Of a DNA stretch of 64,000 bases, positions 1,260 through 14,867 are shown piece by piece. The stretch is taken from the IMG/VR virus record IMGVR_UViG_3300046660_000488, positions 514,293-578,292 of that record; one strand, given 5' to 3'. The position numbers and the translations under genes were made by a program. Position 1 is the first letter of the stretch, and every line of letters starts with the position of its first letter. A model generated the notes under the pieces. It was not told the DNA's origin, ran no database searches, and saw only the letters and a program-made list of their open reading frames with translations.

Positions 1260-1334
1260 GGTTCATTAGCTCAGCGGTAGAGCAATCGCTTGATAAGCGA
1301 TAGGTCGCTGGTTCGAATCCAGCATGAACTACCA
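1260..1334 (+). tRNA. tRNA-Ile(GAT)
   Basis: Cloverleaf, loop TTGATAA, TTCGAAT T-loop, encoded CCA. Confidence 0.95.
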
Positions 1335-1365
1335 AACAGTCGAGAGACAACCCCGAGTACTTTGT

Positions 1366-1439
1366 TCTTCTATAGCTCAGCCCGGTAGAGCAATCGCTTG
1401 ATAAGCGATAGGCCGTAGGTTCAAATCCTACTGGAAGAA
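1366..1439 (+). tRNA. tRNA-Ile(GAT), no encoded CCA
   Basis: TCTTCTA/TGGAAGA acceptor, loop TTGATAA; acceptor stem extended by flanks. Confidence 0.85.
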
Positions 1440-1457
1440 CAAAGTACTTGGGTCCAC

Positions 1458-1532
1458 GGGCCTGTAGTTCAACGGGAGAACGTCTGCATTACAAGCAGAA
1501 TGTCGGGGGTTCAACTCCCTCCGGGCCTACCA
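1458..1532 (+). tRNA. tRNA-Val(TAC)
   Basis: Cloverleaf, loop ATTACAA, CCA. Confidence 0.9.
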
Positions 1533-1737
1533 AAATACTGCTTGACAACGGTTCAACCGAACTTTAGGCAAGCAACCGCGCTCTTCGGGAAGCTCTCTTT
1601 GCTTACCGGACGGATTCCAAAACCTACCATAGGTGCGGAGTCGTGTAAAGGGGCCGGGGTCTTTGACATCGTTGATTTGCGTAACGAATTGGTCGGGCTT
1701 TACCAGAGCCCGGCCGACTTCGGGGACGTGTGTTTGA

Positions 1738-1809
1738 TGAGGGATAGTTCAGCGGTAGAACGCCTGTCTCTGGAACAGGATGTCGTAGGTTCGATCCCTA
1801 CTCCCTCAT
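1738..1809 (+). tRNA. tRNA-Gln(CTG), no encoded CCA
   Basis: TGAGGGA/TCCCTCA acceptor, loop CTCTGGA; 16-bp flanking extension. Confidence 0.85.
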
Positions 1810-1830
1810 CAAACACACGTCCCCATAGGT

Positions 1831-1906
1831 TCGGGGGTAGTTCAGTTGGTAGAACGGCAGTTTTTGGTACTGCATGTCGAAGGTTCGAGTCCTTCTCCCC
1901 GATCCA
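1831..1906 (+). tRNA. tRNA-Gln(TTG)
   Basis: Cloverleaf, loop TTTTGGT, CCA. Confidence 0.9.
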
Positions 1907-1928
1907 AACACTCAGTATTCATCCTTGT

Positions 1929-2014
1929 TGGGGAATGGTGTAATGGTAACATCCCGGCCTTTGACTCCGGAGACCGAGAAGGATTTGTAGGTTCGAGCCC
2001 TACTTCCCCAGCCA
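1929..2014 (+). tRNA. tRNA-Gln(TTG) with long variable region
   Basis: TGGGGAA/TTCCCCA acceptor, loop CTTTGAC, 16-nt variable region, CCA. Confidence 0.85.
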
Positions 2015-2043
2015 GCATGAATATTGAAGACAATGTACTTTGA

Positions 2044-2120
2044 CGCGGAGTGGAGCAGTCAGGTAGCTCGTTTGGCTCATAACCAAAAGGTCGCGGGATC
2101 GAAGCCCGCCTCCGCATCCA
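2044..2120 (+). tRNA. tRNA-Met(CAT), initiator-like (C1.A72)
   Basis: CGCGGAG/CTCCGCA acceptor, loop CTCATAA, T-loop ATCGAAG, CCA. Confidence 0.9.
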
Positions 2121-2129
2121 AGTACATTG

Positions 2130-2359
2130 AGGCCGCGTAACAAGAGAGTGAAGCAGTGATGCCCCGTCATCTGTACCTGACGGGGAGGCCAGAAACAGAC
2201 CGTGCATACGCCCCACGGTCTCTAAATATGGAACACGGACCCACTGGGGCCGTGCGGGAGCCAGCACGACCCGCCGTGGTCTAAGTCCGTAAGGGGCAGA
2301 AAGCGGCACACCCGGTACTGGCGGGTAACCTATTTGGTCGAATGACCATCACCTTTTTT

Positions 2360-2360
<1 letters not shown>
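2130..2360 (+). ncRNA. Candidate structured RNA of unknown family
   Basis: Dense helices 2162-2169/2178-2185, 2197-2204/2214-2221, 2234-2238/2250-2254, 2269-2275/2320-2326; no convincing ORF. Confidence 0.4.
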
Positions 2361-2437
<77 letters not shown>

Positions 2438-2455
2438 ATTGTCCATGTGCTTCGT

Positions 2456-2532
2456 CTAGGCGTAGCGCAGTCTGGTAGCGCGCCTGCTTTGGGAGCAGGA
2501 TGTCGCAGGTTCGAATCCTGCCGCCTAGACCA
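2456..2532 (+). tRNA. tRNA-Pro(TGG)
   Basis: Cloverleaf, loop TTTGGGA, CCA. Confidence 0.95.
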
Positions 2533-2555
2533 AGCACATGGACTTTCACCTACGG

Positions 2556-2638
2556 CAGTCGGTGAGGATGTAACAGGTTCGATCCCTGACCACAGGCTCT
2601 TGCGAGCGTGTGAGTAAGCCCATCCAAACCGACTACTG
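2556..2638 (+). ncRNA. Candidate Y-RNA-like (permuted tRNA-like) RNA
   Basis: Terminal stem AGTCGGT/ACCGACT + GGATG/CATCC enclosing a T-arm CAGG-TTCGATC-CCTG and a further hairpin; no anticodon arm or CCA. Confidence 0.4.
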
Positions 2639-2639
2639 A

Positions 2640-2727
2640 TCCTCACGACCCAGCTTGGTGACGGGCGCCGACTGTTAATCGGATGACATGGAAATGTGGC
2701 AAGGTTCGAAACCTTGGTGAGGAACCA
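2640..2727 (+). tRNA. tRNA-Asn(GTT) with long variable arm
   Basis: TCCTCAC/GTGAGGA acceptor, loop CTGTTAA, variable hairpin ACAT-GGAA-ATGT, CCA. Confidence 0.85.
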
Positions 2728-2797
2728 TTTCGCAGTTGACTTGCATTTAAGTGCTTGTCATAAATAAGGAACACGAAGGTGCTTCGGCACACTTTGT

Positions 2798-2873
2798 TCT
2801 CTCGTAGCTCAGTTGGTAGAGCGTCTGACTGTTAATCAGAATGTCGTAGGTTCGAGTCCTACCGGGGGAGCCA
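2798..2873 (+). tRNA. tRNA-Asn(GTT)
   Basis: Canonical cloverleaf, G73, CCA. Confidence 0.95.
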
Positions 2874-3011
2874 TTTCTACTACGGTGAGCAAGTAACCGC
2901 CTAACGTCCTTTGGACGAAGGTGCTCCAGCACAAGACGCTGGGCTGACAAAGCACTTGCACAATTCTCTTATCCTGCTTTTCGGTGTTTCGCCAATTTTC
3001 GGGATAACGAT

Positions 3012-3087
<76 letters not shown>

Positions 3088-3151
3088 ATTTTCTAATCTC
3101 GCGCAGGGCGCCGTGATGAACGGATAAGTCCGCTGCACGCCTTTCTTGGAT

Positions 3152-3257
3152 GGGCTGGACGCCTCCTGACATCGACGTCAGGGTAGAGGTACGGAACCTC
3201 GGGCTACGGCGACAGGGTTCGCGACCCTACGCGGTTCGATCCCGCGCCGGTCCACCA
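3152..3257 (+). ncRNA. tRNA-like RNA with alanine acceptor identity and no canonical D/anticodon arms
   Basis: GGGCTGG/CCGGTCC acceptor (G3.U70), A73, CCA, T-arm CGCGG-TTCGATC-CCGCG; 106 nt. Confidence 0.7.
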
Positions 3258-3266
3258 AGCAGTTTT

Positions 3267-3342
3267 GGGGCATTAGCTCATCTGGTAGAGCGCGACAATC
3301 GCAATGTCGAGGTGAGCGGTTCAAGTCCGCTATGCTCCACCA
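3267..3342 (+). tRNA. tRNA-Ala(CGC)
   Basis: Cloverleaf, loop ATCGCAA, G3.U70, CCA. Confidence 0.95.
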
Positions 3343-3343
3343 A

Positions 3344-3646
3344 TCACCGGCCGTTCAGGAATTTCTCCGAGCAGATGTAATCGCAGACGGAGAACACCAC
3401 GGCTTCCGCACCAGACTCGAAGGCGTCGCTGCTGTGATCGCCGGACCACTGGGGCTTCGCGAAACTGCACGACACGCCGTCCTCGTGGACGCCGACGTCG
3501 ATGATGTGGCCTTCGCCTTCGAACTTGGTCAGCGTCTCTTTCGCCCACACCACCGCTTCATAGAGGTCTTCGGTGATCTCGGATGGGACATTCGCATACA
3601 TGGCGAAAATCTGGTCCTTGAGCGCTTGGGGATAGTGGGCGGTCAT
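3344..3646 (-). CDS. Hypothetical protein, antisense within tRNA array
   Basis: 100-aa ORF filling the gap between tRNAs, coding-like composition. Confidence 0.7.
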   Translation of the reverse strand: MTAHYPQALKDQIFAMYANVPSEITEDLYEAVVWAKETLTKFEGEGHIIDVGVHEDGVSCSFAKPQWSGDHSSDAFESGAEAVVFSVCDYICSEKFLNGR

Positions 3647-3709
3647 GACGATCTCGGGTTTGGTTTACCAAATCCTACACACAACACCCGGCGGGTTCAA
3701 CCCCGCTAC

Positions 3710-3785
3710 GGGGCATTAGCTCATCTGGTAGAGCGCCTGTTTTGCAAGCAGGAGGTGTGGGGTTCGAGTCCCCAATGCTCCACCA
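3710..3785 (+). tRNA. tRNA-Ala(TGC)
   Basis: Cloverleaf, loop TTTGCAA, CCA. Confidence 0.95.
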
Positions 3786-3791
3786 AACAAT

Positions 3792-3866
3792 GCGTCTGTA
3801 GCTCAGTGGGAGAGCGCTTCCGTGACATGGAAGAGGCCGACAGTTCAATCCTGTCCAGATGCACCA
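3792..3866 (+). tRNA. tRNA-Val(GAC)
   Basis: Cloverleaf, loop GTGACAT, CCA. Confidence 0.95.
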
Positions 3867-3940
3867 TTTCACTACCCAACCCCGGAGGATAACCAAATGA
3901 CCCCGCTAAACGCAGGAAAGTAAGCAAGAAATTCCGAAAG

Positions 3941-4219
3941 ATGATCGACGTGTACGGGATATTCACCCGAGACATTGAAGAGCATCTTGACTTCAGTGAC
4001 GACATGCTCTTGGAAATGTACCAAGCAGAGTCAGTCGGTGGAGACTGTCATCATCGGAATGGCTTCTACCATGGAAAGAAATTCATGGATGTGAGCGTCA
4101 AGATGTGGCGCGAGGACATGTCGAAAGGCACGTTGTTCCTCTGCGAACTCTACGACGATCCTCTCCTGCCCAACTGGTGGTTGGACAAAATCTTCGGTCG
4201 GTCTGGTCCTCCAGACTGA
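3941..4219 (+). CDS. Hypothetical protein (true start may be the out-of-frame ATG at 3897)
   Basis: 92-aa ORF; frame is open from 3893; strong SD GGAGG precedes ATG 3897. Confidence 0.7.
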   Translation: MIDVYGIFTRDIEEHLDFSDDMLLEMYQAESVGGDCHHRNGFYHGKKFMDVSVKMWREDMSKGTLFLCELYDDPLLPNWWLDKIFGRSGPPD

Positions 4220-4226
4220 CCAACAT

Positions 4227-4303
4227 GTAGCCGTAGCTCAGTCTGGTAGAGCGCCTGCCTGAAAAGCAGGGCGTCGGTGGTTCAAATCCACCCGGTTGCA
4301 CCA
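4227..4303 (+). tRNA. tRNA-Phe(GAA)
   Basis: Cloverleaf, loop CTGAAAA, CCA. Confidence 0.95.
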
Positions 4304-4304
4304 T

Positions 4305-4871
4305 TTACTCCTTCTGGAGTTTCTTTTCTCGCCAGAGGCGGCTGTTGGGGCCATCGCCATTCCACCCGTCAAACAGCCCTTCATCCTGTGCGGCTCGCAT
4401 CATCGGAGCAACACGAATCCACGCTTGGTACGGCATAGTTCCTCGGGTGTGGTTGCATCGAACACACGAGGTGTTGACGTTGTTCTGCAAGTGGCCAAGG
4501 CTATTGTCGATCCGGTCCAGCGTAATGCGGACCTCTGGTGGTTCAACACCGCAATAAAAGCACGGCTTGGCCACGCATTCGGCCACGAATTCGAGCGTGA
4601 GGTCGCAGTCGCGGTTCTTTCGCTTGTCGGTATAGCGGCAGTCTTGCAGCACGTTGCGGGCTACGGTCATGTGATCGTTCTCTCTCCGAGCTTTGCGACG
4701 AACCGCATGGCGACGCTCTTCGGCTTGTTGGAACCCTTCCGGGTTGCTGATGAACTGTTCGCGGCGGCAGGGGCCGCATTTCTTTCGGCGCCGACCGGCG
4801 CTCATGTGGAACGCGCTCTCGGGGCGATCCTCTCCGCAATATTTGCACAACATAGTGCCATTAAGGCACAT
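4305..4871 (-). CDS. HNH (His-Me finger) homing endonuclease-like protein
   Basis: CKYC/CGPC zinc motifs and CFYCG...LDRIDNSLGHLQNNVNTSCVRCN HNH signature. Confidence 0.85.
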   Translation of the reverse strand: MCLNGTMLCKYCGEDRPESAFHMSAGRRRKKCGPCRREQFISNPEGFQQAEERRHAVRRKARRENDHMTVARNVLQDCRYTDKRKNRDCDLTLEFVAECVAKPCFYCGVEPPEVRITLDRIDNSLGHLQNNVNTSCVRCNHTRGTMPYQAWIRVAPMMRAAQDEGLFDGWNGDGPNSRLWREKKLQKE

Positions 4872-4907
4872 CTGGTTTTCCAAATTCAATATTTGGTTAA
4901 CCACTTT

Positions 4908-4984
4908 CAGGGCGTAGCGCAGCATGGTAGCGCACTTGGTCGGGAACCAAGGGGTCGCAGGTTCAAATCCTGCCGTTCTGACCA
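4908..4984 (+). tRNA. tRNA-Pro (loop TCGGGAA; GGG in canonical register)
   Basis: C1-G72, A73, CCA; non-canonical C33/A37. Confidence 0.85.
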
Positions 4985-5003
4985 TTTCGCCTACGGGCAT
5001 TAT

Positions 5004-5080
5004 CTATGTGTAGCTCAGTCTGGTAGAGCGCTGCTTTCGGGAAGCAGAGGCCGCAGGTTCAAATCCTGCCACGTAGACCA
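5004..5080 (+). tRNA. tRNA-Pro(CGG)
   Basis: Cloverleaf, loop TTCGGGA, CCA. Confidence 0.95.
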
Positions 5081-5103
5081 AAACACCGGCCACGAGCCAT
5101 CAT

Positions 5104-5180
5104 CTGAGTGTAACGCAGTCTGGTAGCGTGCCTGTTTCGGTAACAGGAGGTCGCGGGTTCAAATCCTGCCACTCAGACCA
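5104..5180 (+). tRNA. tRNA-Pro(CGG), U37 variant
   Basis: Cloverleaf, loop TTCGGTA, CCA. Confidence 0.9.
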
Positions 5181-5299
5181 ATTTCCTCGAACGAGGATAC
5201 GACTTTGGGAAGCTGACCGTTCCAGTGAGTTCGGCAGGGATGACCACCCGGCAGCTAGGCCTCGTCAGCCCGGCATGTCAGGCTAACCCAATTGACCAC

Positions 5300-5376
5300 G
5301 GTGCTGTAGCTCAGTCTGGTAGAGCAGCGGGCTCATAACTCGCTTGTCGCAGGTTCAAATCCTGCCAGCACCACCA
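5300..5376 (+). tRNA. tRNA(CAT): elongator Met or Ile2
   Basis: Cloverleaf, G1-C72, loop CTCATAA, CCA; Met versus lysidine-Ile cannot be resolved by eye. Confidence 0.9.
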
Positions 5377-5382
5377 ACCTTC

Positions 5383-5457
5383 GGGTGATTAGCTCAGTGG
5401 TAGAGCGCTGCTTTCACACGGCAGAGGTCACTGGTTCAAGCCCAGTATCACCCACCA
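5383..5457 (+). tRNA. tRNA-Val(CAC)
   Basis: Cloverleaf, loop TTCACAC, CCA. Confidence 0.95.
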
Positions 5458-5485
5458 AGAAAAAGGGGCCGAAGCCCCCTGATCC
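5458..5485 (-). terminator. Terminator-like hairpin for the minus-strand gene
   Basis: AAAAAGGGG-CCGAAG-CCCC immediately beyond the stop at 5486. Confidence 0.5.
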
Positions 5486-5728
5486 TTACTCTTCGACGTA
5501 CTGGATTTCTCGCCAAAAATCTCCGGTCGGCGTCACGGTAAAACCACCGGTGTTGGAGACGATCCTGACGTAATGTTCTGCCAGTTCGAGCACGGCCGTT
5601 TCGAGATAGCGGCCGTCGTCTTCGGTGGTGGACGTCAGAACGACCGTGCCGGTCGTGTTGAGCGGATCGAGCGCACCGGCGCGAACGGTGTCGAGCAACG
5701 CTTCGAAGTATACGTCGTAAGTAGCCAT
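5486..5728 (-). CDS. Hypothetical protein
   Basis: MATYDVYF start with SD AAGGA upstream. Confidence 0.7.
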   Translation of the reverse strand: MATYDVYFEALLDTVRAGALDPLNTTGTVVLTSTTEDDGRYLETAVLELAEHYVRIVSNTGGFTVTPTGDFWREIQYVEE

Positions 5729-5803
5729 GAAATGTGTCCTTGAAATGGGTTTAGTATCCAGCCACAAGGATAGCACTGGCCGCTTATTATAAGCAAAATA
5801 TAC

Positions 5804-5879
5804 GCCGCCTTAGCTCAGTTGGTAGAGCGCGTCCTTGGTAAGGACGAGGCCACGGGTTCAAGTCCCGTAGGTGGCTCCA
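5804..5879 (+). tRNA. tRNA-Thr(GGT)
   Basis: Cloverleaf, loop TTGGTAA, CCA. Confidence 0.95.
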
Positions 5880-5893
5880 TTTTCCCTCCTGAT

Positions 5894-5968
5894 GCCGGGG
5901 TAGCTCAGGGGTAGAGCAGCGGGCTGAAAATCCGCGTGTCGGAGGTTCGAATCCTCTCCCCGGCACCA
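5894..5968 (+). tRNA. tRNA-Phe(GAA)
   Basis: Cloverleaf, loop CTGAAAA, CCA. Confidence 0.95.
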
Positions 5969-5969
5969 T

Positions 5970-6044
5970 GGTCGCGTAGCTCAGCGGGAGAGCGTCCCCT
6001 TGACGTGGGGAAGGTCGCAGGTTCAATCCCTGCCGCGACTACCA
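5970..6044 (+). tRNA. tRNA-Val(GAC)
   Basis: Cloverleaf, loop TTGACGT, CCA. Confidence 0.95.
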
Positions 6045-6074
6045 TTTTTCTCAACCAGAAAGGAACCGACTCCC

Positions 6075-7171
6075 ATGGGGTTCAGCCGCTAAGTCCAGAG
6101 AGCCTTCAACGGTATCTGGCGATCAAAGACCTAACTGACCCGGCGACGGGTAAACACGCAATCAACGTTGTCCTCCAGAAATTGACGAAGGCGGTCCAAG
6201 ACTGGGCGGGTTTACACCCGGAAGTCCTGCGTTCCTCCCCAATCGTTTCCATCCAAGACAATTACGACCGCCTCTACTATGAGGCGGACGCTGTCGCACG
6301 CTCGTCGCGCTATTCGCATTATGTGGATGACACCCACATCTTGCGGACGCACACGACGGCGGCCGTGCCCGGCTATCTGCGCGAGACCACGGACGACCGT
6401 CTGATGGTTCTGCCGGGCATCGTCTATCGCCGCGACGTCATGGACAAGATGCACGTCGGCGAACCACACCAAGTCGATCTGTGGATCGTCAAGCAGGCCC
6501 GCCTGCGGCGCCGCGATCTTGAGGCCATGATCTCGGCCATCATGACTGCGATCCTACCCGGCCGCGTGTACCGCTGCAACGAGACCATCCATCCCTACAC
6601 CGTCAACGGCCTTGAGGTCGAAGTGCAGGTTGGCGACCGTTGGGTCGAGGTCTTGGAATGCGGCGAGGCCCACCCATGGGTTCTGAACGACGCTGGGCTG
6701 TCTTCAGCCACATGGTCGGGACTGGCCATGGGCATCGGTCTGGACCGTCTGGTGATGCTCCTGAAGGGCGTGGAGGACATCCGGCTGCTACGGAGCACCG
6801 ACAAGCGCGTCTACGGCCAGATGCAGACCATGCAGCCCTATCTACCGGTCAGCGATCAGCCGAGCGCTAAGCGGGACCTGTCCATCGTCGTTGACGAAGT
6901 GGACATGGAACTGTTGGGCGACAAGGTCCGCACTTTGCTGGGCGACCGGGCCGAGTGGATGGAGGAAATCATCCACGTCGGCGACTACGGCTGGCACGAT
7001 GTTCCGGACGCTGCTCGCCAACGTCTGGGTATGGGGCAGGATCAACGGAACCTCGTTATCCGGCTGATCATGCGCTCGCCGACCCAGAGCATCCCTCGCG
7101 AGGTCGCAAACGAGGTCTACGCGCAAGTCTACGAAGGTCTGCATCAGGGCTCCACGGTCGGCTATCGCTGA
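6075..7171 (+). CDS. Monomeric PheRS-like class II ligase (catalytic domain + FDX-ACB); start requires a -1 shift at codon 2-3
   Basis: LRTHTTA, motif 2 PGIVYRRD..H..EPHQVD, motif 3 GLAMGIGLDRLVML, C-terminal RDLS..RSPTQS FDX-ACB-like; SD-preceded ATG 6075 is out of frame. Confidence 0.85.
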
Positions 7172-7204
7172 CCGTGGATGGTTCTGTGCCACCTAAATAG
7201 TTCC

Positions 7205-7594
7205 ATGGATCGTGAAGCCAAACTCGCTGAACTCATTGATCGCGTCAAGGATTTGCCGGACAAGGCGACCACGCGCGGATACACCTCATATCTGATCATC
7301 GTTCCCCATCATGACATGGCGGGCGACGTATCGATGGCCGTCTCTGAAGAATTCAGGGAATTTGGATACGGCGTTGACAAGGTGACGAAGTCTGAAGTTC
7401 GTGGAGACGAGTTTAGGGTCCTCGTGCGGCCCATCAGTGCTGCTGCGACGAACATCCACAACTTGACCTTCCACGTGTTCTGCATTCCGGGTGATGACGG
7501 ACTGACGGGTCATCAGAAGCAAACATTGCAGAAGATGCTTGAAGCGTTCAGCTACAAGGCACTGGAAACTGCTGATCTCCGCATCGTCTACTGA
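7205..7594 (+). CDS. Hypothetical protein
   Basis: ORF downstream of TAAATA (7194). Confidence 0.7.
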   Translation: MDREAKLAELIDRVKDLPDKATTRGYTSYLIIVPHHDMAGDVSMAVSEEFREFGYGVDKVTKSEVRGDEFRVLVRPISAAATNIHNLTFHVFCIPGDDGLTGHQKQTLQKMLEAFSYKALETADLRIVY

Positions 7595-7600
7595 ATCTCG

Positions 7601-7628
7601 TTGACGAGATCGAAAATGTGTGCATAGT
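7601..7628 (+). promoter_or_regulatory. Sigma70-type promoter
   Basis: TTGACG-N16-CATAGT with TG extended -10. Confidence 0.55.
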
Positions 7629-7649
7629 GCGATCCGAACAGGAGGCACT

Positions 7650-7865
7650 ATGGAAACTTGGGTTCTCGTAATCGTCGTGTGGATGTCGCCGAGCTTTAGC
7701 CATAGCGGTGGTTCTGGCGCGCTGGCGATCACCAACGTCCCCGGCTATGCGTCGTGGGACGAGTGCAATCGCGCGGCTGGCACGGTCTCCAAGAGCGGCG
7801 GAGAAACCAAGGGCTACTGCGTCCCCGGTCCCAAGACCATCGTCGTCAAGCCGAAGGGCAAGTGA
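7650..7865 (+). CDS. Small exported/membrane protein
   Basis: SD GGAGG; hydrophobic N-terminus; two Cys. Confidence 0.75.
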   Translation: METWVLVIVVWMSPSFSHSGGSGALAITNVPGYASWDECNRAAGTVSKSGGETKGYCVPGPKTIVVKPKGK

Positions 7866-8833
7866 TGCACCCGACCCGCGACCGTCTCATCAAGATCATC
7901 GAGCGCACCGAGAACGAGATCGGCTCCGACGCGGCGGCCGACGAAATCCTCGCGCTGCTGCGTGAGCCGCCCAGAAACCACATGGACGTGGTCTGGCCGG
8001 ACGAGGACGAACTGAACGTTCGCCGGACCATGCTCATGGCCGACGTCGTCGCCTTCATCGCGCCCGAGGCGCGCAAGGATGGCAACGGCGGGTACGCGCC
8101 CTGCGACGATGCTGACATCCGGGCGCTGAACGCGCTCATCCGCGAAATCATCGACATGCGCTTCGTTCGAGACAGCGACCGTGGACAGGTCGTGGATTTC
8201 GCCACGGTCAACCGTCTCGAAAATCGCCTCCACACCTTCTACGAACCCCACTCGCCGGACATGCGGGACGAAGCCTCGCCTTCGGAGCGCACCGTCTACG
8301 CCATGCAGATCGCCACGGTCGCTGGGCTGATGGCCGCCGAGACCGGCCGCATGCTGAACCAACTGGGTCGTCGCATGCAGTTTCAAATCGAGGCCGACGA
8401 CAAGAAAGCCTTGCAGGACGCCGAAGCTCGCCGCGACATGGAGGCGGCTGAGCTTTTCGTCTCGCTGGTCTCGACCCGGCCGTTCCACCAATCGCTCTCC
8501 GACTATCGGTCGGCGGCGGCCGAGCTAGGCCCTCGCAACGAGGCGGTGAAGCTGATGCGCGACGCGCTGGCCAAGTCGATCCTGCCGGACACCGAGAACG
8601 CGGCCATCCACATCGACCGCTTGATCGACGAGAACAAGATGGACGAAGCCATCGCCGCTCTGGAGGATGGTTTCGACAAATGGTTCCGTGGCGCCTTCTC
8701 AGAGCAGCGTGAGCGCATCAACACCTACTATCGCGGACTTCGTGAGCGGGCGCGTCGCGCCAAGCTCCCGGCTGATCCGGCGTGGCAGATTTTCATTTCG
8801 CCGCAGGAACCCACGGGAGACCAGTATGCGTGA
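7865..8833 (+). CDS. Hypothetical protein
   Basis: 322-aa ORF translationally coupled to the upstream gene. Confidence 0.8.
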   Translation: MHPTRDRLIKIIERTENEIGSDAAADEILALLREPPRNHMDVVWPDEDELNVRRTMLMADVVAFIAPEARKDGNGGYAPCDDADIRALNALIREIIDMRFVRDSDRGQVVDFATVNRLENRLHTFYEPHSPDMRDEASPSERTVYAMQIATVAGLMAAETGRMLNQLGRRMQFQIEADDKKALQDAEARRDMEAAELFVSLVSTRPFHQSLSDYRSAAAELGPRNEAVKLMRDALAKSILPDTENAAIHIDRLIDENKMDEAIAALEDGFDKWFRGAFSEQRERINTYYRGLRERARRAKLPADPAWQIFISPQEPTGDQYA

Positions 8834-9179
8834 CACCGTCCGGATCGTCACCACCAACAAGGTGCTGTTCGATTTCGCCCAGAAATTCCAGACTGAGCAT
8901 CGCAGCGCGGCGCTGGGCGACCATGTCTTCCTGATTCTGAAGGGTCTGATCATGACCGGGATCGAGGACGCCATGAAGATGGCCGACAAATGCGGCTGGA
9001 CGGGCGTCGAGTTGGTTTCGGCCAGCAGCAACCGCCTGATCGAGGTCGCCAAGGAAGGCGACCCCAAGCGCAACATCGGCTCGATGACCTTCCAGCGACG
9101 CGACGAGGACCAACCTCAGCGCATGATCGCCGTCAATTTCTACGAGGACCACACCCTGTCATGCACGCTTCTGGGATGA
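8826..9179 (+). CDS. Hypothetical protein
   Basis: Coupled ORF, MRDTVRIV start. Confidence 0.75.
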   Translation: MRDTVRIVTTNKVLFDFAQKFQTEHRSAALGDHVFLILKGLIMTGIEDAMKMADKCGWTGVELVSASSNRLIEVAKEGDPKRNIGSMTFQRRDEDQPQRMIAVNFYEDHTLSCTLLG

Positions 9180-9676
9180 CGCCGCTCGACATCGAATTGG
9201 CCAAGCTCGCCGAGCACAAGGCCATCGGCTGGGACTTCGACAAGACACTCGTCAACAGCGAGGCGTCGGAAATCCTGCATCGCTTCATCTTGGATCACCC
9301 CGAGATCGAGCACCACATCGTCACGTTCCGCTCGCACGGCTTGCAGCACAACGTCTGGGTCGAGCTTGAGCAATACGCGGACGCGCCGGGTCGCGGCCAT
9401 TTCAAGGGCGTCGTCAACATCGACGACCACCGCTGGGAAGCGTGGAACGACGCCGTGCGGCGCCGGACGCCGGGTGGTGGCCTGAGCGGGCCGATGAGCG
9501 ACGCAGAGGTCTTCTACTGCTCGTGGAAAGGTCAGGTCTGCAAAGACCTTGGCCTGACCCTGCTGGTCGATGATGACCCGTCGTGCGTCACCTTGGGCTG
9601 CGAGGCCCACGGAATCGCCTTCTATGACCCGGACAGCCTTATCCGGGCAGTCCGACGTGGTCCAGCACCCACATAA
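9176..9676 (+). CDS. HAD-superfamily phosphatase-like protein
   Basis: N-terminal WDFDKTL (DxD motif I), T-F-R motif II, LVDDD motif IV. Confidence 0.7.
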   Translation: MTPLDIELAKLAEHKAIGWDFDKTLVNSEASEILHRFILDHPEIEHHIVTFRSHGLQHNVWVELEQYADAPGRGHFKGVVNIDDHRWEAWNDAVRRRTPGGGLSGPMSDAEVFYCSWKGQVCKDLGLTLLVDDDPSCVTLGCEAHGIAFYDPDSLIRAVRRGPAPT

Positions 9677-9794
9677 CGCCGATGCTGGACACGATCATAA
9701 TGACCGTGACGCACCATGCGAACAGCATGCCGCGCGCGGGCGATAGCGGATCGGGGTTCACCCATTCCTCAGAATTCCAGTCGTTCACTGGCAT
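9639..9794 (-). CDS. Small single-pass membrane protein (51 aa)
   Basis: Read manually: MPVNDW...LFAWCVTVIMIVSSIGVMWVL; below the ORF-track cutoff. Confidence 0.5.
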   Translation of the reverse strand: MPVNDWNSEEWVNPDPLSPARGMLFAWCVTVIMIVSSIGVMWVLDHVGLPG

Positions 9795-9867
9795 CTTATC
9801 GTCTTGATCTTCCACAACGTGTTCCTCCCACGTAGTGATTTATTTTGGTTAACCAAATTGTCGCTTA

Positions 9868-10125
9868 TTATTCCCACCAGCGCAATTTGAAATGGACCAC
9901 GTGCTGCGGTTTTTTGAATGCGAACACGAGCCATTCGCCGCCGGAATTGATGTAGGTCCAGTCGGCCTGCGGGGTGTACTCGGCCATCCAGACGGTCAAA
10001 TCCTCGGCCAGCTTGTCCTTCGGCATCAACTCGTCGCGGTGCTTGATCGCGATGACCAGTTCAGGGTCTCTGCCCTGCGTCACGAACTGGTAGCTCGGGT
10101 GCTTCTTGAGATCGGTGGCGTTCAT
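9868..10125 (-). CDS. Hypothetical protein (F-KLRW C-terminal motif)
   Basis: ORF; C-terminus VHFKLRWW resembles ends of the 21606, 22008 and 47770 proteins. Confidence 0.75.
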   Translation of the reverse strand: MNATDLKKHPSYQFVTQGRDPELVIAIKHRDELMPKDKLAEDLTVWMAEYTPQADWTYINSGGEWLVFAFKKPQHVVHFKLRWWE

Positions 10126-10610
10126 CCGATGGCGTCCGCCATCATCAGGCCCATCATCAGCATAGAATCTGACGAGGCGTGGATCGTGAACCGGTGGTCA
10201 AGATGGTGTCCGGGGATGATCGTGATCAGGTGGTTCCCCAGCGTGTATGAGACGACTGGAGGCTTGTTGGTGTTGGGGTAATACGCCGGGTAGAGCGAGG
10301 CGACGAACCGCTCGCCTTGGCTGCTCTTAATCTCAACGAAACGGCTGAAGCGACCGGCCACGTCCTCGACGCGGATGCTCCAGCGATAGCTCCCATGATC
10401 GCCATATTGGACGAGGTGTCGGCGACTTGAGGCCTCGAAGCACATTTCGTAAAAAGCTCGCCAGACTCCGACCTGAACCGAACCGGCGAGCATGTCGCCT
10501 TCGATCTCGTCGCGGCTGACGAAGAGCTTGAGGCCCGCCGTGGCGCGTTTGCGCTTGCGGGCGCCGAGCGAAAATGGCTCGGCGACTTCGGGAACAGAAT
10601 CGAACGCCAT
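10122..10610 (-). CDS. Hypothetical protein
   Basis: Coupled minus-strand ORF. Confidence 0.7.
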   Translation of the reverse strand: MAFDSVPEVAEPFSLGARKRKRATAGLKLFVSRDEIEGDMLAGSVQVGVWRAFYEMCFEASSRRHLVQYGDHGSYRWSIRVEDVAGRFSRFVEIKSSQGERFVASLYPAYYPNTNKPPVVSYTLGNHLITIIPGHHLDHRFTIHASSDSMLMMGLMMADAIG

Positions 10611-10688
10611 GATACCAGTCTGAAATGGATCGACGCCTAAATTCAGCAGCGTCCAGATCAGATTAGCACATGGTTTACGAGACGGAAA

Positions 10689-10943
10689 TTATTCCGTGAT
10701 CTCGACGAGACGAAAAGCGACGGCCTCGCAGGGGAACTTTTCCTTGGCGGCTTGCTTCTCGGCCTCTTCCTCGACGATCCACAGACGGTCGAAGCGATGA
10801 CCCCAGCGGTCTTCGTCGGTGTGCGTGTTGTGGGCGTTGAAGATTTGCTTGAAACGGCCGTCGCCGATCCGACGCACTTTCCACACCCGCGACGGATCGT
10901 CGGGTGTGGTGATGTGGCGAGTGTTCTCGTAGACGTAGGTCAT
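10689..10943 (-). CDS. Hypothetical protein
   Basis: Coupled minus-strand ORF. Confidence 0.7.
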   Translation of the reverse strand: MTYVYENTRHITTPDDPSRVWKVRRIGDGRFKQIFNAHNTHTDEDRWGHRFDRLWIVEEEAEKQAAKEKFPCEAVAFRLVEITE

Positions 10944-11611
10944 CAGGCGACTTTCGCGGCGTCTTCGGCTTCTCGTTCGGCGCGGCGCGCCGCTCGATAG
11001 TCGTTGATGATCTTCTCGACGCTCGCATAGACGGACGGATCACCGTCCTTCAGGTGCGGCAGGAGATCACGCTTCTCCGGAACGTAGCGCTGGGCGAAAT
11101 CCGGATCGTCGTTGATGATCGAATCCAAGTTGTCCTCGGAATCGACCAGCTTGATCGTCTGGACTTCGGCTGGCTGCGCGGCCGTGTGATCGCGGTTCAG
11201 CGCCATCCGGACCTTGCGGTTTCCATCCCACGGCATGGCGACGTCGGTCAGGCCGTCCACGTACAGAGCGACCAGATCGCCGAATTCCTGACGGATCAAC
11301 TCGATGGTGATGCCGGGGACCATGTACAGAACGATGTCACCAGCCTTGAAGGCCGGGCGAGAACAGAATTCGCCGGTCTTGACGATGACCTCGCCATTAC
11401 CATCAACGAATTTTCGAGTGTCCTCGACGGTGTCATGCAGCAGGGCTGCGACAACCATTTCGACGGTGGCGCCGGGCAGTGCGGCGATCCGCAGGGCCAG
11501 ACGGCGCGGGTGGACGATATACGGCTCGTCCGTATACCTACGCCGCTGACCGACAGCAGCGTGCGCGACCATGGCGAACAGGTCGGCCTTCACGATTAAA
11601 GGATGGTTCAT
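10943..11611 (-). CDS. HD-domain hydrolase, RelA/SpoT hydrolase (SAH/Mesh1)-like
   Basis: AH..GQ.R....PYIVHP, AALLHDTVEDT, EFGD.VA..VDGLTD, IKL.D..DN motifs. Confidence 0.85.
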   Translation of the reverse strand: MNHPLIVKADLFAMVAHAAVGQRRRYTDEPYIVHPRRLALRIAALPGATVEMVVAALLHDTVEDTRKFVDGNGEVIVKTGEFCSRPAFKAGDIVLYMVPGITIELIRQEFGDLVALYVDGLTDVAMPWDGNRKVRMALNRDHTAAQPAEVQTIKLVDSEDNLDSIINDDPDFAQRYVPEKRDLLPHLKDGDPSVYASVEKIINDYRAARRAEREAEDAAKVA

Positions 11612-11659
11612 ATCTATCATGCCGCGCATTATGCGGCATGGATACAATTTCGTCAACCA

Positions 11660-12385
11660 CTATTCCTTGAGCAAGCGGCCCAAGGTCAACACCCTGTCAA
11701 GTACTACTTGGTTCTGATAGTGGATTCCGCGTCTATAAAACTTCCTGCCCTCGTGCATCATATAGGCAGTCACGTAGCCTTCCTCGCAATAGGCGAAGTA
11801 GAGTTTGACGTTGAATCTCTCGATCTGGATGTTCGGCAACACCACGGCGTGCATACCGAACCGGTTCTCATAACCGATGGTGAACGGTTGGTTTCGAACC
11901 AAGGCCATGCACGGTTCGAAGAACGATCCGAGAGCCATGTCCCAAGTCGTGTTGAAGTCTTTGCTGTATTCGGGGAGACCTTTGGCGTAGGCCATAATCT
12001 TCACAACGTCATGATAGTAGGCGTCGATGTTGGCGTGCTTCGACAGGTCTTCTCTTGACGGTGAACTTCGCGGCATATACCACCCGAATTGGTCACTGCC
12101 TATCGGGTTGTGCTGCACCTTGCAGTTGCCAAGATAGCCGGGCGTTCTGGCTGCGACCGGCGGGAACGGACGGGCCAGAAGGCCGTAGTCGTCCAGAACC
12201 CAGTCAAGTTTGTGTCGATCTTCCTTGCGCGTCTGGCGAGTGAAAGACGGCTCGGGCTTTTCCGGCCATTTCCATTCGCAGATGTACAGGCGCTGGAATT
12301 CCTCAAGGCTCAGAGGTTGTCGAATCTGCTCATGCCAGTCGGCGAGCATCTTTTCAGCTTTTTCGAAAACGCCTTTGGCACTCAT
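11660..12385 (-). CDS. Hypothetical protein
   Basis: 241-aa ORF. Confidence 0.75.
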   Translation of the reverse strand: MSAKGVFEKAEKMLADWHEQIRQPLSLEEFQRLYICEWKWPEKPEPSFTRQTRKEDRHKLDWVLDDYGLLARPFPPVAARTPGYLGNCKVQHNPIGSDQFGWYMPRSSPSREDLSKHANIDAYYHDVVKIMAYAKGLPEYSKDFNTTWDMALGSFFEPCMALVRNQPFTIGYENRFGMHAVVLPNIQIERFNVKLYFAYCEEGYVTAYMMHEGRKFYRRGIHYQNQVVLDRVLTLGRLLKE

Positions 12386-12423
12386 CCGTTTGGTTTACCA
12401 AACGTTGACGGTGCGGGGCAACC

Positions 12424-12789
12424 CTAAATGTAGACGGCCGACATGATCCGGTCATGGCGCCGGGCGACCGTCAGCACGGTCTTATAGCCACGCAGCATGC
12501 CATCGCGGACTTGTGGGTTCATCCCGCCGCCTTGGAGCAGGCCGGAGACGTCGCGCACGGCGTCCTCGACGTCCTTCAGCTTGGTGGCCCCGTGGATCGA
12601 GTTGCGGACGGTCTGGTAGGCGGCCAGCGCGCCGACGATGTCGCCCAGACGGTTCATCGAGCCGACGTCGCTCAGGGCTTCGAACGAGTTGCGATTGATC
12701 GCCTCGACGAATTGCTGCTGGCGCCCACGCTCGGACGCGATCAGGGAGTCCAGTTCGTTTCGAAATCGGCCAATGAACGTGTCAGACAT
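12424..12789 (-). CDS. Hypothetical protein
   Basis: ORF in coupled minus-strand run. Confidence 0.75.
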   Translation of the reverse strand: MSDTFIGRFRNELDSLIASERGRQQQFVEAINRNSFEALSDVGSMNRLGDIVGALAAYQTVRNSIHGATKLKDVEDAVRDVSGLLQGGGMNPQVRDGMLRGYKTVLTVARRHDRIMSAVYI

Positions 12790-13102
12790 AGAGCACCACG
12801 ATCTTGCCCGCTTTCGCGAACATGTTGAAGTTGCATTCCCCCTTGGTGCAGATGGCCTCGCGGACCTTCCTGCGTTTGCCGACGCCCTTCAGCAGGGCGC
12901 GGGCCAGAGCCAGAGCAGTTTCGTCCATGGCCGGGATCATCGTGTAGAACGACGCCTTGCGCGGGACGACCTTGATCCGGCCTGCGTACGGATTGACCTC
13001 GCCATCCTCGTAATAGTCCGGCACGTCCATGCGGTCGTACTCAGCGTAGAGTTCGCTGACCGGCATGATCTGGACGTTGGTCAACCCGTTCTGGACGCTC
13101 AT
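12782..13102 (-). CDS. Hypothetical protein
   Basis: ORF in coupled minus-strand run. Confidence 0.75.
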   Translation of the reverse strand: MSVQNGLTNVQIMPVSELYAEYDRMDVPDYYEDGEVNPYAGRIKVVPRKASFYTMIPAMDETALALARALLKGVGKRRKVREAICTKGECNFNMFAKAGKIVVLYV

Positions 13103-13518
13103 GCGGGCTCACCGAAGAGCCGGGCGGCCCACGACGCCAGCCCGGTCGCGGCGACCTTCGGCGGCTGGTGCAGGACGACCTCGCGGCGGCTGCGCGCCAG
13201 ACGGCGGGGCCACTCTTCGAGGATCACGTAGACGCCGTTCTCAAAGCGCGCCAGCGTCCAGCCGTCCTCGATAGGCGGTCGGTCGGTGGGGCAATGGACG
13301 ATCTGTCCCTTCGGAAGCTGGTTCCGGTATTTCTTGTTGCGGAAATTCCAGTGGTCGGAAACCCGAAGGCTTCCTTCCGGGGTGTGACCCCACGTTTTGT
13401 CGGGCGTGTCGTACAGCGAACTGCCGAAGGGGCTCGGGAACACGACCTTCCATTCGGCCGCGATCTTGTCGGCAAGCTCGGAAGGCATGGTGCTCGGCTG
13501 TAGGAACGATGTCGGCAA
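13099..13518 (-). CDS. Hypothetical protein
   Basis: ORF, SPFGSSLY...RVSDHWNF motif. Confidence 0.75.
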   Translation of the reverse strand: MPTSFLQPSTMPSELADKIAAEWKVVFPSPFGSSLYDTPDKTWGHTPEGSLRVSDHWNFRNKKYRNQLPKGQIVHCPTDRPPIEDGWTLARFENGVYVILEEWPRRLARSRREVVLHQPPKVAATGLASWAARLFGEPA

Positions 13519-13545
13519 AGCGGGTCTCCACTAATTGTGGAGCGC

Positions 13546-13573
13546 ACTATACATGAAGCTCAAGCACAGTCAA
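13546..13573 (-). promoter_or_regulatory. Sigma70-type promoter
   Basis: TTGACT-N16-TATAGT on the minus strand with TG extension. Confidence 0.6.
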
Positions 13574-13952
13574 CGTACTTTTCAAGCAAACCGTAGCGAC
13601 GAGGGCGATCCCAATTTGGGTCATGCTCTTTCGCGCGAGTTTCCGAGATCGCGGTGAACGGCTCTTGCTTCTCGACGTAGCAAAAGCCGTCGCCGGTGTG
13701 CTGCACCATTGGTGCGAACGGGCGACGCTTGCGCTGTTCAACCGGCGCCCAGCCAACGAACAATCCGTCAAAGCCTTTGCCGTTGATCTGGAGATACCAT
13801 CGACCAGCCCCGACGACGCCGACCTGCTCGTAATAGGCCGTGACCGTGGACAGGTACGGCTCGTCGTACTTGCCCCGAACCTCGACCAACACCAGAACCG
13901 GCCGCCCATCCGTGGGGACGGTCTTGGGGTCTCGCCACTTGATGCGGGTCAT
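13560..13952 (-). CDS. Hypothetical protein (DUF551-like N-terminus)
   Basis: W...P.DG.PVLV motif typical of small phage proteins. Confidence 0.7.
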   Translation of the reverse strand: MTRIKWRDPKTVPTDGRPVLVLVEVRGKYDEPYLSTVTAYYEQVGVVGAGRWYLQINGKGFDGLFVGWAPVEQRKRRPFAPMVQHTGDGFCYVEKQEPFTAISETRAKEHDPNWDRPRRYGLLEKYVDCA

Positions 13953-14194
13953 CAGCTAATCCTCACCGGCTTGCCGAAGAAAGGGTTGCGCGGGCTCATC
14001 AGGCTGAACTGGTTGCGCTTGTCGGCGAAGTTGGCCGCCACGATCTCGTTCTCGGCCTCGTCCCAGCCAGCTTCCCAGAATTGCAGGAAGTACGCCCGCC
14101 GGTAGATGCGGGCACCCATGAAGCGTTCCTTGCCCTCACGCCGCGCGTGATAGCCCTTGTTCTGGATCGCCCACGTGACCTTGTTGTGCCGCAT
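13952..14194 (-). CDS. Hypothetical protein
   Basis: Coupled ORF. Confidence 0.7.
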   Translation of the reverse strand: MRHNKVTWAIQNKGYHARREGKERFMGARIYRRAYFLQFWEAGWDEAENEIVAANFADKRNQFSLMSPRNPFFGKPVRIS

Positions 14195-14484
14195 CAGGCG
14201 GCGATGGGCTGGGTCTTCAGCAGCTTGGCGCGGTAGCGCTCGATCAGGCCCCAGTCGCGGGCGCGGATCGGCGTGTCGTACTCGGCCATGAAGCGCTGGT
14301 GGTCGTTGCCGTTCAGGCCGACCTTACCCGGCCCGATGTTGCGATGATGGGCGTCCATGGCGGCTTCGCGCAGGTCGTGATCGCCAGCGGCAAAGCGTTG
14401 GATGATGTCAAGGTCTTCCTGCGGCATCGTCGCCAGCACGGACGTGGCCTTAGCGGGAATCAGGCTCTTCAAAAGCGTAAGCAT
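14194..14484 (-). CDS. Hypothetical protein
   Basis: Coupled ORF with SD GGAGG. Confidence 0.7.
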   Translation of the reverse strand: MLTLLKSLIPAKATSVLATMPQEDLDIIQRFAAGDHDLREAAMDAHHRNIGPGKVGLNGNDHQRFMAEYDTPIRARDWGLIERYRAKLLKTQPIAA

Positions 14485-14549
14485 GTGGGCCTCCTATTTT
14501 CGAATACCAAAATAGCCGGTCACGCGCCTTCACGCAACCGTCGTCAAAA

Positions 14550-14867
14550 TCAGTCGATGCTGCGGTCGCGGTCGCGCCACGCTTCGACCTTGGACATCAG
14601 GTCGGCGTCCAGCGGAAAGGGCTTCTGCCGCTCTTCCACCAAGGCGAGGAAATCAGCGGCGTCCTTCGTGTTCACGAGGATGTTCAGGTGGCGAATCTCG
14701 AAGCACACCCGAGCGAAACCGACGCCGCACGGGCTGTTGGTGATGATCTGCTCCCAGCGTTTTCCTTTCCAGAAAAACTCGTCGATGGTTTTCGCCATTA
14801 CGTCGGCGCCGTCACCCGAATAGTAGAGATCGAGGTATTGGACCGTGTCGTTGAAGCGAACTTGCAT
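14550..14867 (-). CDS. Hypothetical protein
   Basis: ORF with SD GGAG. Confidence 0.7.
   Translation of the reverse strand: MQVRFNDTVQYLDLYYSGDGADVMAKTIDEFFWKGKRWEQIITNSPCGVGFARVCFEIRHLNILVNTKDAADFLALVEERQKPFPLDADLMSKVEAWRDRDRSID

Follow-up and report, generated by a model that had tools for sequence, protein, structure and literature searches.

A Phe codon at a conserved two-frame junction ahead of a phage-borne, phenylalanine-free PheRS-like gene: a candidate tRNA-sensing −1 frameshift gate

The 64,000-nt stretch analyzed here (the window) covers positions 514,293 to 578,292 of the IMG/VR virus record IMGVR_UViG_3300046660_000488 and is part of a jumbo phage genome (578-kb contig). Directly downstream of a tRNA array lies a gene related to phenylalanyl-tRNA synthetase (PheRS), which is out of frame with the start signals that precede it. 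A Shine-Dalgarno (SD) sequence, AAAGGA (6059..6064, plus strand), ends 10 nt before an ATG that opens a very short open reading frame (ORF), hereafter the gate ORF (6075..6092, plus strand). It consists of ATG (6075-6077), GGG (6078-6080), TTC (6081-6083), AGC, CGC and TAA (6090-6092), that is, a start, a Gly codon, a Phe codon, two variable codons and a stop, and encodes MGFSR. The main ORF (6077..7171, plus strand; 364 codons plus TGA at 7169-7171) occupies the −1 frame (positions = 2 mod 3), where the same region reads ...CAT GGG GTT CAG CCG CTA AGT CCA GAG...; it is open from within the tRNA genes to its TGA, and its translation from 6077 begins GVQPLSPESLQRYLAIKDLTDP... An earlier note, made from the DNA letters, had described this layout of SD, ATG 6075, MGFSR with its stop and a synthetase frame at −1, and inspection of the sequence confirmed it. 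The first canonical in-frame start after the tRNA genes is TTG 6182..6184 (plus strand), residue 36 of the product that a −1 slip would yield, and the automatic gene caller began the public protein there (P0001, 329 aa). The same note had held that no in-frame start occurs until deep in the catalytic domain; there is indeed none before 6182, and the statement is slightly overstated in that TTG 6182 lies in the N-terminal helices.

The main ORF product matches NCBIfam NF051887, "PheS-related mystery ligase SrmL" (438.7 bits, E 1.4e-131, against a cutoff of 300), with profile positions 1-349 aligned to residues 16-358, and stays below the cutoffs of true PheS models (TIGR00469 pheS_mito, 120.5 bits against a cutoff of 258). 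Pfam searches returned tRNA-synt_2d (3.8e-35) and a weak FDX-ACB match. An AlphaFold2 (AF2) model was obtained with high confidence (pLDDT 91.3, pTM 0.85), and its top Foldseek matches are human mitochondrial PheRS structures (3cmq, 5mgw) over the full length (TMq 0.79-0.80), human mitochondrial PheRS also being the best sequence match in the Protein Data Bank (PDB; 2e-22). Pfam, model and Foldseek agree on one chain in which an FDX-ACB anticodon-binding domain comes after a class II catalytic core, the organization of mitochondrial-type PheRS as in FARS2 (PDB 3CMQ, TM 0.79). The window protein differs from FARS2 and the pheS_mito family in its low identity (~21% to FARS2), in its sub-cutoff score and in being free of phenylalanine, and the FPFT motif of mitochondrial PheRS, which presumably holds the substrate ring, aligns with an HPYT that is invariant in the SrmL family. 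Canonical active-site signatures of the mitochondrial type are motif 2 (YRRD..H..HQ), motif 3 (GxGxGxxR) and the aromatic FPFT; the window protein has VYRRD...PHQVD and GIGLDRL, neither of which varies within the family. Unlike mitochondrial PheRS, SrmL-type genes are found on phages, plasmids and islands; one bacterial copy sits on a repABC plasmid of Rhizobium rhizogenes (L175) and another on an island (L174) next to integrase, capsid and NusG-paralogue genes, which points to an accessory, mobile function.

Phenylalanine is absent from all 364 residues of the window protein, compared with 3.8% in 21 other ORFs of the window (P ~6e-7). In the SrmL family, 101 of 125 non-frameshift members contain none, and members of the frameshift clade described below contain 0-5. 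The only Phe codon associated with the window gene is that of the gate, which productive ribosomes would never decode under the slip proposed here. A protein purged of phenylalanine can be made without Phe-tRNA, as would be expected of an enzyme produced when Phe-tRNA is unavailable, and a gate built on a Phe codon would be the matching control. The protein is very likely a backup PheRS of the monomeric mitochondrial type that can be built without phenylalanine. Flanking tRNA-Phe genes, the Phe-free composition and a gate codon that is the gene's only Phe codon tie it to Phe-tRNA; for the charging of tRNA-Phe with phenylalanine, the flanking genes are circumstantial evidence.

Of the SrmL family, which has roughly 550 or more genomic and 560 or more metagenomic loci, ~175 loci (designated by L numbers) were gathered from viral, genome and metagenome collections and assemblies and anchored on the conserved DLTD motif. 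When the region was compared with 50,697 phage records at the nucleotide level, only tRNA matches were returned; at the protein level the best match comes from an unannotated 635-kb uncultured phage, whose gene opens with an ordinary in-frame ATG. An SD-preceded in-frame ATG is present in more than 100 loci (Myxococcota, Actinomycetota, Gemmatimonadota, Gammaproteobacteria and others), most often 54 nt before the anchor. In 28 distinct sequences, including jumbo phages and alphaproteobacteria, the distance from start to anchor is 53 nt, which puts the start out of frame by one base, as in the window. Their consensus comprises gaaagg, a spacer of 8-11 nt (mode 9), a start codon (ATG in 22, TTG in five, GTG in one), a second codon GGG, GGA, GAG or GAA, then TTT (24) or TTC (4) and two variable codons. 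TAA is codon 6 in 27 of the 28, the exception being L010, with TGA directly after TTT. The main ORF is in the −1 frame in every case and is always intact, with 346-388 codons from the DLTD motif to the stop. Sixteen of these loci have no in-frame ATG, GTG or TTG between the nearest upstream in-frame stop and the conserved LSPE, and this stop lies just upstream, often as a TGA inside ..A TGA AAG G... The combination that the earlier note had singled out in the window, a start, a Gly-type codon, TTY and an early stop, is therefore a recurrent property of 28 distinct homologous loci.

In a maximum-likelihood tree, 27 frameshift loci fall into a clade (starred; SH-aLRT 99) that mixes jumbo-phage and alphaproteobacterial genes. 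L010 (Roseinatronobacter alkalisoli) joins the frameshift clade at an unresolved fork within it, and L019 (Arenibaculum pallidiluteum, 46% identity to the window) groups with Rhizobium genes having an in-frame ATG GGG AGC. Four members inside the big frameshift clade have reverted to in-frame starts. L166 (at 591) reads ATG GGA GTG CCA CTA AGT (MGVPLSPERL) and L169 (at 3001) TTG GTT TGC; both can be seen as natural "revertants" that lost the Phe codon along with the offset and that display the expected N-terminus. L014 and L015 have an in-frame start with MGS... (MGSHNLT in L014). The 124 distinct upstream regions of non-frameshift members were also scanned for upstream ORFs rich in Phe, which gave seven scattered hits and no pattern, and the Myxococcota and Actinomycetota leaders inspected held nothing comparable to the gate. 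In several in-frame Myxococcota members (L027, L061, L022 and others) the spacer between SD and ATG contains TTTCC (GAGAGGTTTCCATG, GAGGATTTCCATG), with no upstream start codon seen that would read the TTT or TTC.

A second gate was found in seven Nostocales loci (L034, L059, L075, L078, L163, L176 and L177; Scytonema, Pelatocladus, Calothrix and metagenomic relatives). Here the SD is followed by ATG AAC NNN NNG GAC TTY (peptide MN..DF), and the main ORF is again at −1. TAA follows TTY directly in five of these loci and the stop comes four codons later in two; no in-frame start precedes DLT in any of them. Past the junction, the codons for L-L-K-P-D-L-T in the main frame differ solely at synonymous positions (CTA/CTC/TTA, AAA/AAG, CCG/CCA, GAC/GAT, TTG/CTA/CTC, ACG/ACA/ACC), indicating that they are translated. 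Public annotations begin these cyanobacterial proteins at the TTG of DLT (LTNPANG.../MTNPANG...) and thus probably truncate them. The Phe codon at the frame junction recurs under a different leader peptide (MN..DF versus MGF/MEF), and it is invariant in three clades (28 + 7 loci) in which both frames are intact, the two-frame architecture of −1 programmed frameshifting.

The gate layout is more than chance, with a constraint on nucleotides that goes beyond coding. Beneath the Phe codon, the main frame has GTT or ATT in 28/28 loci, although in the same gene bodies these account for just 17% of Val and 18% of Ile codons, respectively. The TAA is supplied by main-frame CTA or TTA in 25/28 (ATA in two more), and these two triplets together make up 5.8% of Leu codons in the gene bodies. 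The next main-frame codon always starts with C or T, its amino acid varies (S, L, Q, P, R) and its third position can be any base (TCG, TCA, TCC, TCT), so the synonymous sites are not merely frozen by recent ancestry. The gate Phe codon itself is TTT in 24/28 loci, while gene bodies prefer TTC (44:7); the wobble-read TTT may be favoured for being decoded slowly, or the main-frame codon that overlaps it may impose it. Downstream, 11 nt after the Phe codon, lies a clade-conserved hairpin (CCAGA-GA-GCC-(UUCAAC)-GGU-A-UCUGG, 6095..6119, plus strand). Its 8 bp are interrupted and weak (93.8% paired), and it is found at the same place in 25 relatives, with one covarying pair at synonymous third positions of two Arg codons (CGU..CGA versus CGC..CGG; CG in 10, UA in 10, GC in two). 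The whole leader folds no better than shuffled sequences (z = 0.48), the small hairpin alone being conserved, and frameshift-stimulatory structures are expected 5-9 nt downstream, closer than the hairpin seen here.

Where the change of frame takes place can be narrowed down. It must fall after the start and before the zero-frame stop, and L019 has a main-frame TAG two codons before its start, which confines the change to codons 1-5. All 35 loci read G_G[G/A]N_UUY at the junction: the codon before the Phe codon is GGG, GGA, GAG, GAA or GAC (for example G_GGA_UUU, G_GAG_UUU and G_GAC_UUC in relatives), G always precedes it, and GCN and GUN never occur in this place. The tRNAs reading these codons have C at position 36 and C or U at position 35, and after a −1 step they can keep pairing with GG at codon positions 1 and 2, through G:C36 and G:C35 or G:U35, so that at every junction the P-site tRNA can re-pair at −1, as hungry-codon frameshifting demands. 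The base before UUY is always R or C and never U, hence tRNA-Phe itself could not re-pair at −1 (it would face GUU at position 1 in the window), which disfavours both a tandem, dnaX-like slip and a slip of tRNA-Phe in the P site. The pattern fits what a single P-site slip with an empty A site would predict. In kinetic work by Gallant and Lindsley and on dnaX, the hungry-codon leftward slip is reported to work in just this way, the P-site tRNA slipping next to an unoccupied A site. An SD about 12 nt before the P-site codon is within the range where SD pairing favours −1 slips, as in dnaX, and the initiation SD of the window clade ends ~12 nt before that codon. The dnaX-like SD stimulation proposed in the earlier note is thus compatible with the spacing in the window clade; it cannot be general or essential, since the cyanobacterial site lies at least 9 nt further from its SD.

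We propose the following sequence of events for the slip site G_GGG_UUC (6077..6083, plus strand). Ribosomes would start at ATG 6075, guided by the SD, and decode GGG, bringing fMet-Gly-tRNA into the P site and UUC into the A site. With Phe-tRNA(Phe) available, Phe would be inserted and translation would end three codons on at the TAA, leaving only MGFSR. With Phe-tRNA(Phe) scarce, the A site would stay empty and the peptidyl-tRNA-Gly would move from GGG 6078-6080 to GGG 6077-6079, replacing UUC by GUU (Val) in the A site, so that translation resumes in the synthetase frame. This would yield MGVQPLSPE..., 365 residues long and lacking Phe altogether, an enzyme that would recharge tRNA-Phe, phage copies included, and thereby close the gate. 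The core of this scheme, re-pairing of tRNA-Gly from GGG to GGG, had been put forward in the earlier note together with autoregulation through Phe-tRNA supply; the conserved G_G[G/A]N_UUY and the in-frame MGV.../MGS... relatives agree with its predictions at the sequence level. The regulatory idea gains strength from the lack of Phe in the protein and most of its family and from the tRNA-Phe genes on either side of the phage genes. That expression depends on a conserved and required −1 recoding event is, in our judgment, highly probable; that the whole constitutes a frameshift gate on a backup PheRS sensing Phe-tRNA is somewhat more likely than not, and we favour it. We infer that the slip occurs, that it takes place at this step, that its rate is set by the supply of Phe-tRNA and that the enzyme charges tRNA-Phe with Phe.

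Several observations weigh against this scheme. Slips of a single tRNA are usually inefficient, and G_GGG_UUC does not conform to the canonical slippery heptamer X_XXY_YYZ. UUY is not a rare codon, hence scarcity would have to come from physiology and not from codon usage. GAR codons (phage subclade) and GAC (cyanobacteria) re-pair through a G:U at the middle position, with an additional third-position mismatch for Asp. The SD could not act as a general stimulator, given that the extra distance in cyanobacteria is also put at four codons or at 15 nt or more, and neither the strict position of the TAA nor the hairpin is explained by the model. Some loci have distant upstream in-frame starts, and in most cyanobacterial genes the gate ORF is closely followed by an in-frame TTG, so that alternative initiation may be possible at some loci. 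The substrate amino acid is a prediction, and HPYT in place of FPFT could mean a changed specificity.

Among the rival explanations, the one that survives best accepts the −1 frameshift as needed and takes it to be constitutive or blind to Phe-tRNA scarcity, either an old deletion rescued by fixed slippage or a slip of tRNA-Phe in the P site (N_UUY to NUU). A conserved architecture indeed shows recoding and not regulation, and the stop that directly follows the Phe codon in five cyanobacterial loci and in L010 could, by the logic of prfB, act as a slow A-site codon that lets tRNA-Phe slip. Such a slip would nevertheless mispair at position 1 in every locus, would leave the strict G_G[G/A]N before the Phe codon unexplained, and would yield a product carrying Phe in a family that has purged ~350 positions of this residue. 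For non-sensing frameshifting as a whole, an invariant Phe codon in a PheS homologue would be a coincidence of ~3% per origin, and it recurs in separate architectures. We therefore regard this explanation as unlikely.

Termination and reinitiation, in which the short ORF is translated to its TAA and ribosomes restart nearby at a non-AUG codon of the synthetase frame (the TTG of DLT in many cyanobacteria), is very unlikely as an account of the family, and more plausible in cyanobacteria than elsewhere. Overlap of a main ORF with a very short ORF ahead of it is typical of translational coupling, the gate TGA of L177 overlaps an in-frame TTG, and a few alphaproteobacterial loci have an in-frame TTG two codons past the junction. 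The window and most relatives, however, have no in-frame ATG, GTG or TTG within 25 codons of the TAA, and L075, L163 and L176 lack the TTG in question. Main-frame codons upstream of any candidate restart vary synonymously and so are translated, and reinitiation offers no reason for the Phe codon or the G_GRN rule.

A start at the annotated TTG 6182, giving the 329-aa product and leaving the short ORF at 6075 unrelated or merely repressive, has in its favour that it is the first canonical in-frame start and the choice of the gene caller. We reject it as the native start and consider it highly improbable: the family conserves the protein sequence of the preceding 35 residues (LSPERLxRYLALRDLTDP) while their main-frame codons vary synonymously, relatives have CTG, ATC, GTG or GTT at this position, and no SD precedes it. 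In the AF2 model, helices 7-14 and 28-44 precede or span residue 36, so that such a start would delete the first and cut the second, mutilating the fold.

Finally, a missing G in the GGGG run through sequencing or assembly error, or a recently inactivated pseudogene whose true form reads ATG GGG GTT..., which the earlier note had kept as its alternative and which has in its favour that the 4-G homopolymer lies exactly at the frame change and that one extra G would give an in-frame MGVQ, is excluded: an independently assembled (Logan) contig from the probable source run, at a word depth of ~175, has the same four G and is identical over 5600-7200 without a difference or indel, the same one-base offset recurs in 27 further distinct loci from other samples and organisms across deep divergence, the site lacks a homopolymer in many relatives (ATGGGATTT, TTGGAGTTT), and full-length ORFs are intact in all frameshift loci. 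Other runs yielded only tRNA-like pieces or distant relatives, and hence no independent read of the G run.

Four further candidates were rejected. Transcriptional slippage fails on the many relatives without a homopolymer, and a slip of the initiator tRNA on the absence of pairing at NAU or CUU, besides offering no reason for the Phe codon. Against a shift at the TAA, whether +1 or −1, stands the variable codon 5, and +1 gives the wrong frame. In-frame near-cognate starts are not conserved (ATT in 9/28, TTG in 4/28).

The proposed gate can be set beside several known systems. As in prfB, an early, slowly decoded A-site codon would sense the gene's own product, the zero frame gives a short peptide, an SD lies upstream, and many lineages have kept the arrangement, which has repeatedly given way to an in-frame form. 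Whereas prfB shifts +1 at a stop codon read by a protein factor, with its SD 3 nt upstream, the shift here would be −1 at a sense codon read by an aminoacyl-tRNA, at codon 2/3 (5/6 in cyanobacteria) and with an SD spacing of ~12 nt. Hungry-codon leftward frameshifting in starved E. coli, reportedly described by Gallant, Lindsley, Weiss and others, shares the −1 slip of a peptidyl-tRNA that awaits a scarce aminoacyl-tRNA and the need for re-pairing; it is known as an error under artificial starvation, whereas here it would be a conserved, required step of expression. By analogy, the logic would be that of prfB with the opposite direction and a sense codon, and the mechanics those of hungry-codon slippage. 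The dnaX gene and B. subtilis cdd resemble the window clade in an SD ~10-14 nt before the P-site codon and a downstream hairpin; they differ in their tandem slippery heptamer and in making a fixed ratio of two products, where one is expected here, and the hairpin of the window clade is weak and 11 nt away, the cyanobacterial version lacking the SD spacing. The pheM and pheL leaders, which attenuate pheST and pheA, likewise read Phe-tRNA supply through ribosome pausing in a short ORF with Phe codons. The present leader has a single Phe codon, overlaps the main ORF and would be read out as reading frame and not as transcription, and no terminator-like site was found on the plus strand within 5400-7700.

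Release factor 2 and antizyme are known cases of autoregulation by recoding, and we know of no aminoacyl-tRNA synthetase under such control. A natural hungry-codon frameshift yielding a useful trans-frame protein was not known to a review of the field (Atkins et al. 2016, PMC5009743). The GeneTack survey of conserved prokaryotic frameshifts makes no mention of phenylalanyl, pheS or tRNA ligase, and lists just one +1 cluster labelled "tRNA synthetase", which is not further specified and is assigned to phase variation. In the literature covered, including work later than that review, our search found no relevant account of a frameshift in a PheRS gene, a monomeric bacterial PheRS, a Phe-free synthetase or SrmL. 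We give even odds to the possibility that this is the first natural, conserved hungry-codon frameshift, with a synthetase paralogue switched on by scarcity of its own product and a Phe-free "bootstrap" PheRS spread by jumbo phages, plasmids and islands. If so, amino-acid sensing would gain a new class, based on the choice of frame at a single codon, and a widespread family that NCBI calls a "mystery ligase" would gain a function. The gate would also show how cells and phages rebuild Phe charging when none is left, and suggest why jumbo phages carry cassettes of tRNA-Phe and synthetase, possibly to survive host shut-off or an attack on Phe-tRNA. Systematic mis-annotation, with N-termini of these genes called truncated or extended, would be corrected.

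Upstream of the gate ORF, ARAGORN identified 24 tRNA genes in <5 kb (1260-6044, plus strand), with duplicates for Ile (two), Gln (three), Met (three), Pro (four), Asn (two), Ala (three), Val (four) and Phe (two), and two unusually long calls, tRNA-Gln 1929-2014 (86 nt) and tRNA-Asn 2640-2727 (88 nt). The two tRNA-Phe (GAA) genes lie at 4227..4303 and, two genes 5' of the synthetase-like gene, at 5894..5968; the last of the array, tRNA-Val (GAC) at 5970..6044, ends 30 nt before ATG 6075 (all plus strand). A promoter and terminator scan found no such site between tRNA-Val and the synthetase-like gene, which is therefore probably co-transcribed with the array. Rfam at a permissive threshold matched only tRNA, with no leader or T-box. 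In related phages, the gene is part of a cassette tRNA-Phe(GAA) - srmL - tRNA-Phe(GAA) within tRNA arrays (L002, L086, L087, L167, L168, L170, L171 and L173); in the window both tRNA-Phe copies are upstream, and no tRNA lies 3' of the gene.

Elsewhere in the window, PHROGs matches include a DnaB-like helicase, a DNA helicase, the large subunit of ribonucleotide reductase and a virion protein. Nine ORFs were searched against Pfam, eight downstream of the gene (within 7178-14823, 138-359 aa) and one that precedes the tRNA array (105-845), and none of the nine matched at E <= 0.001. Around srmL in other genomes, a NusG-family paralogue lies immediately 5' of the gene in the alphaproteobacterial island (L174:7064-7429), and further neighbours (L173:5266-5688, L168:8851-9315, L172:5453-5827) comprise a PTH2 peptidyl-tRNA hydrolase on one phage-like contig and, on two others, GNAT acetyltransferases.

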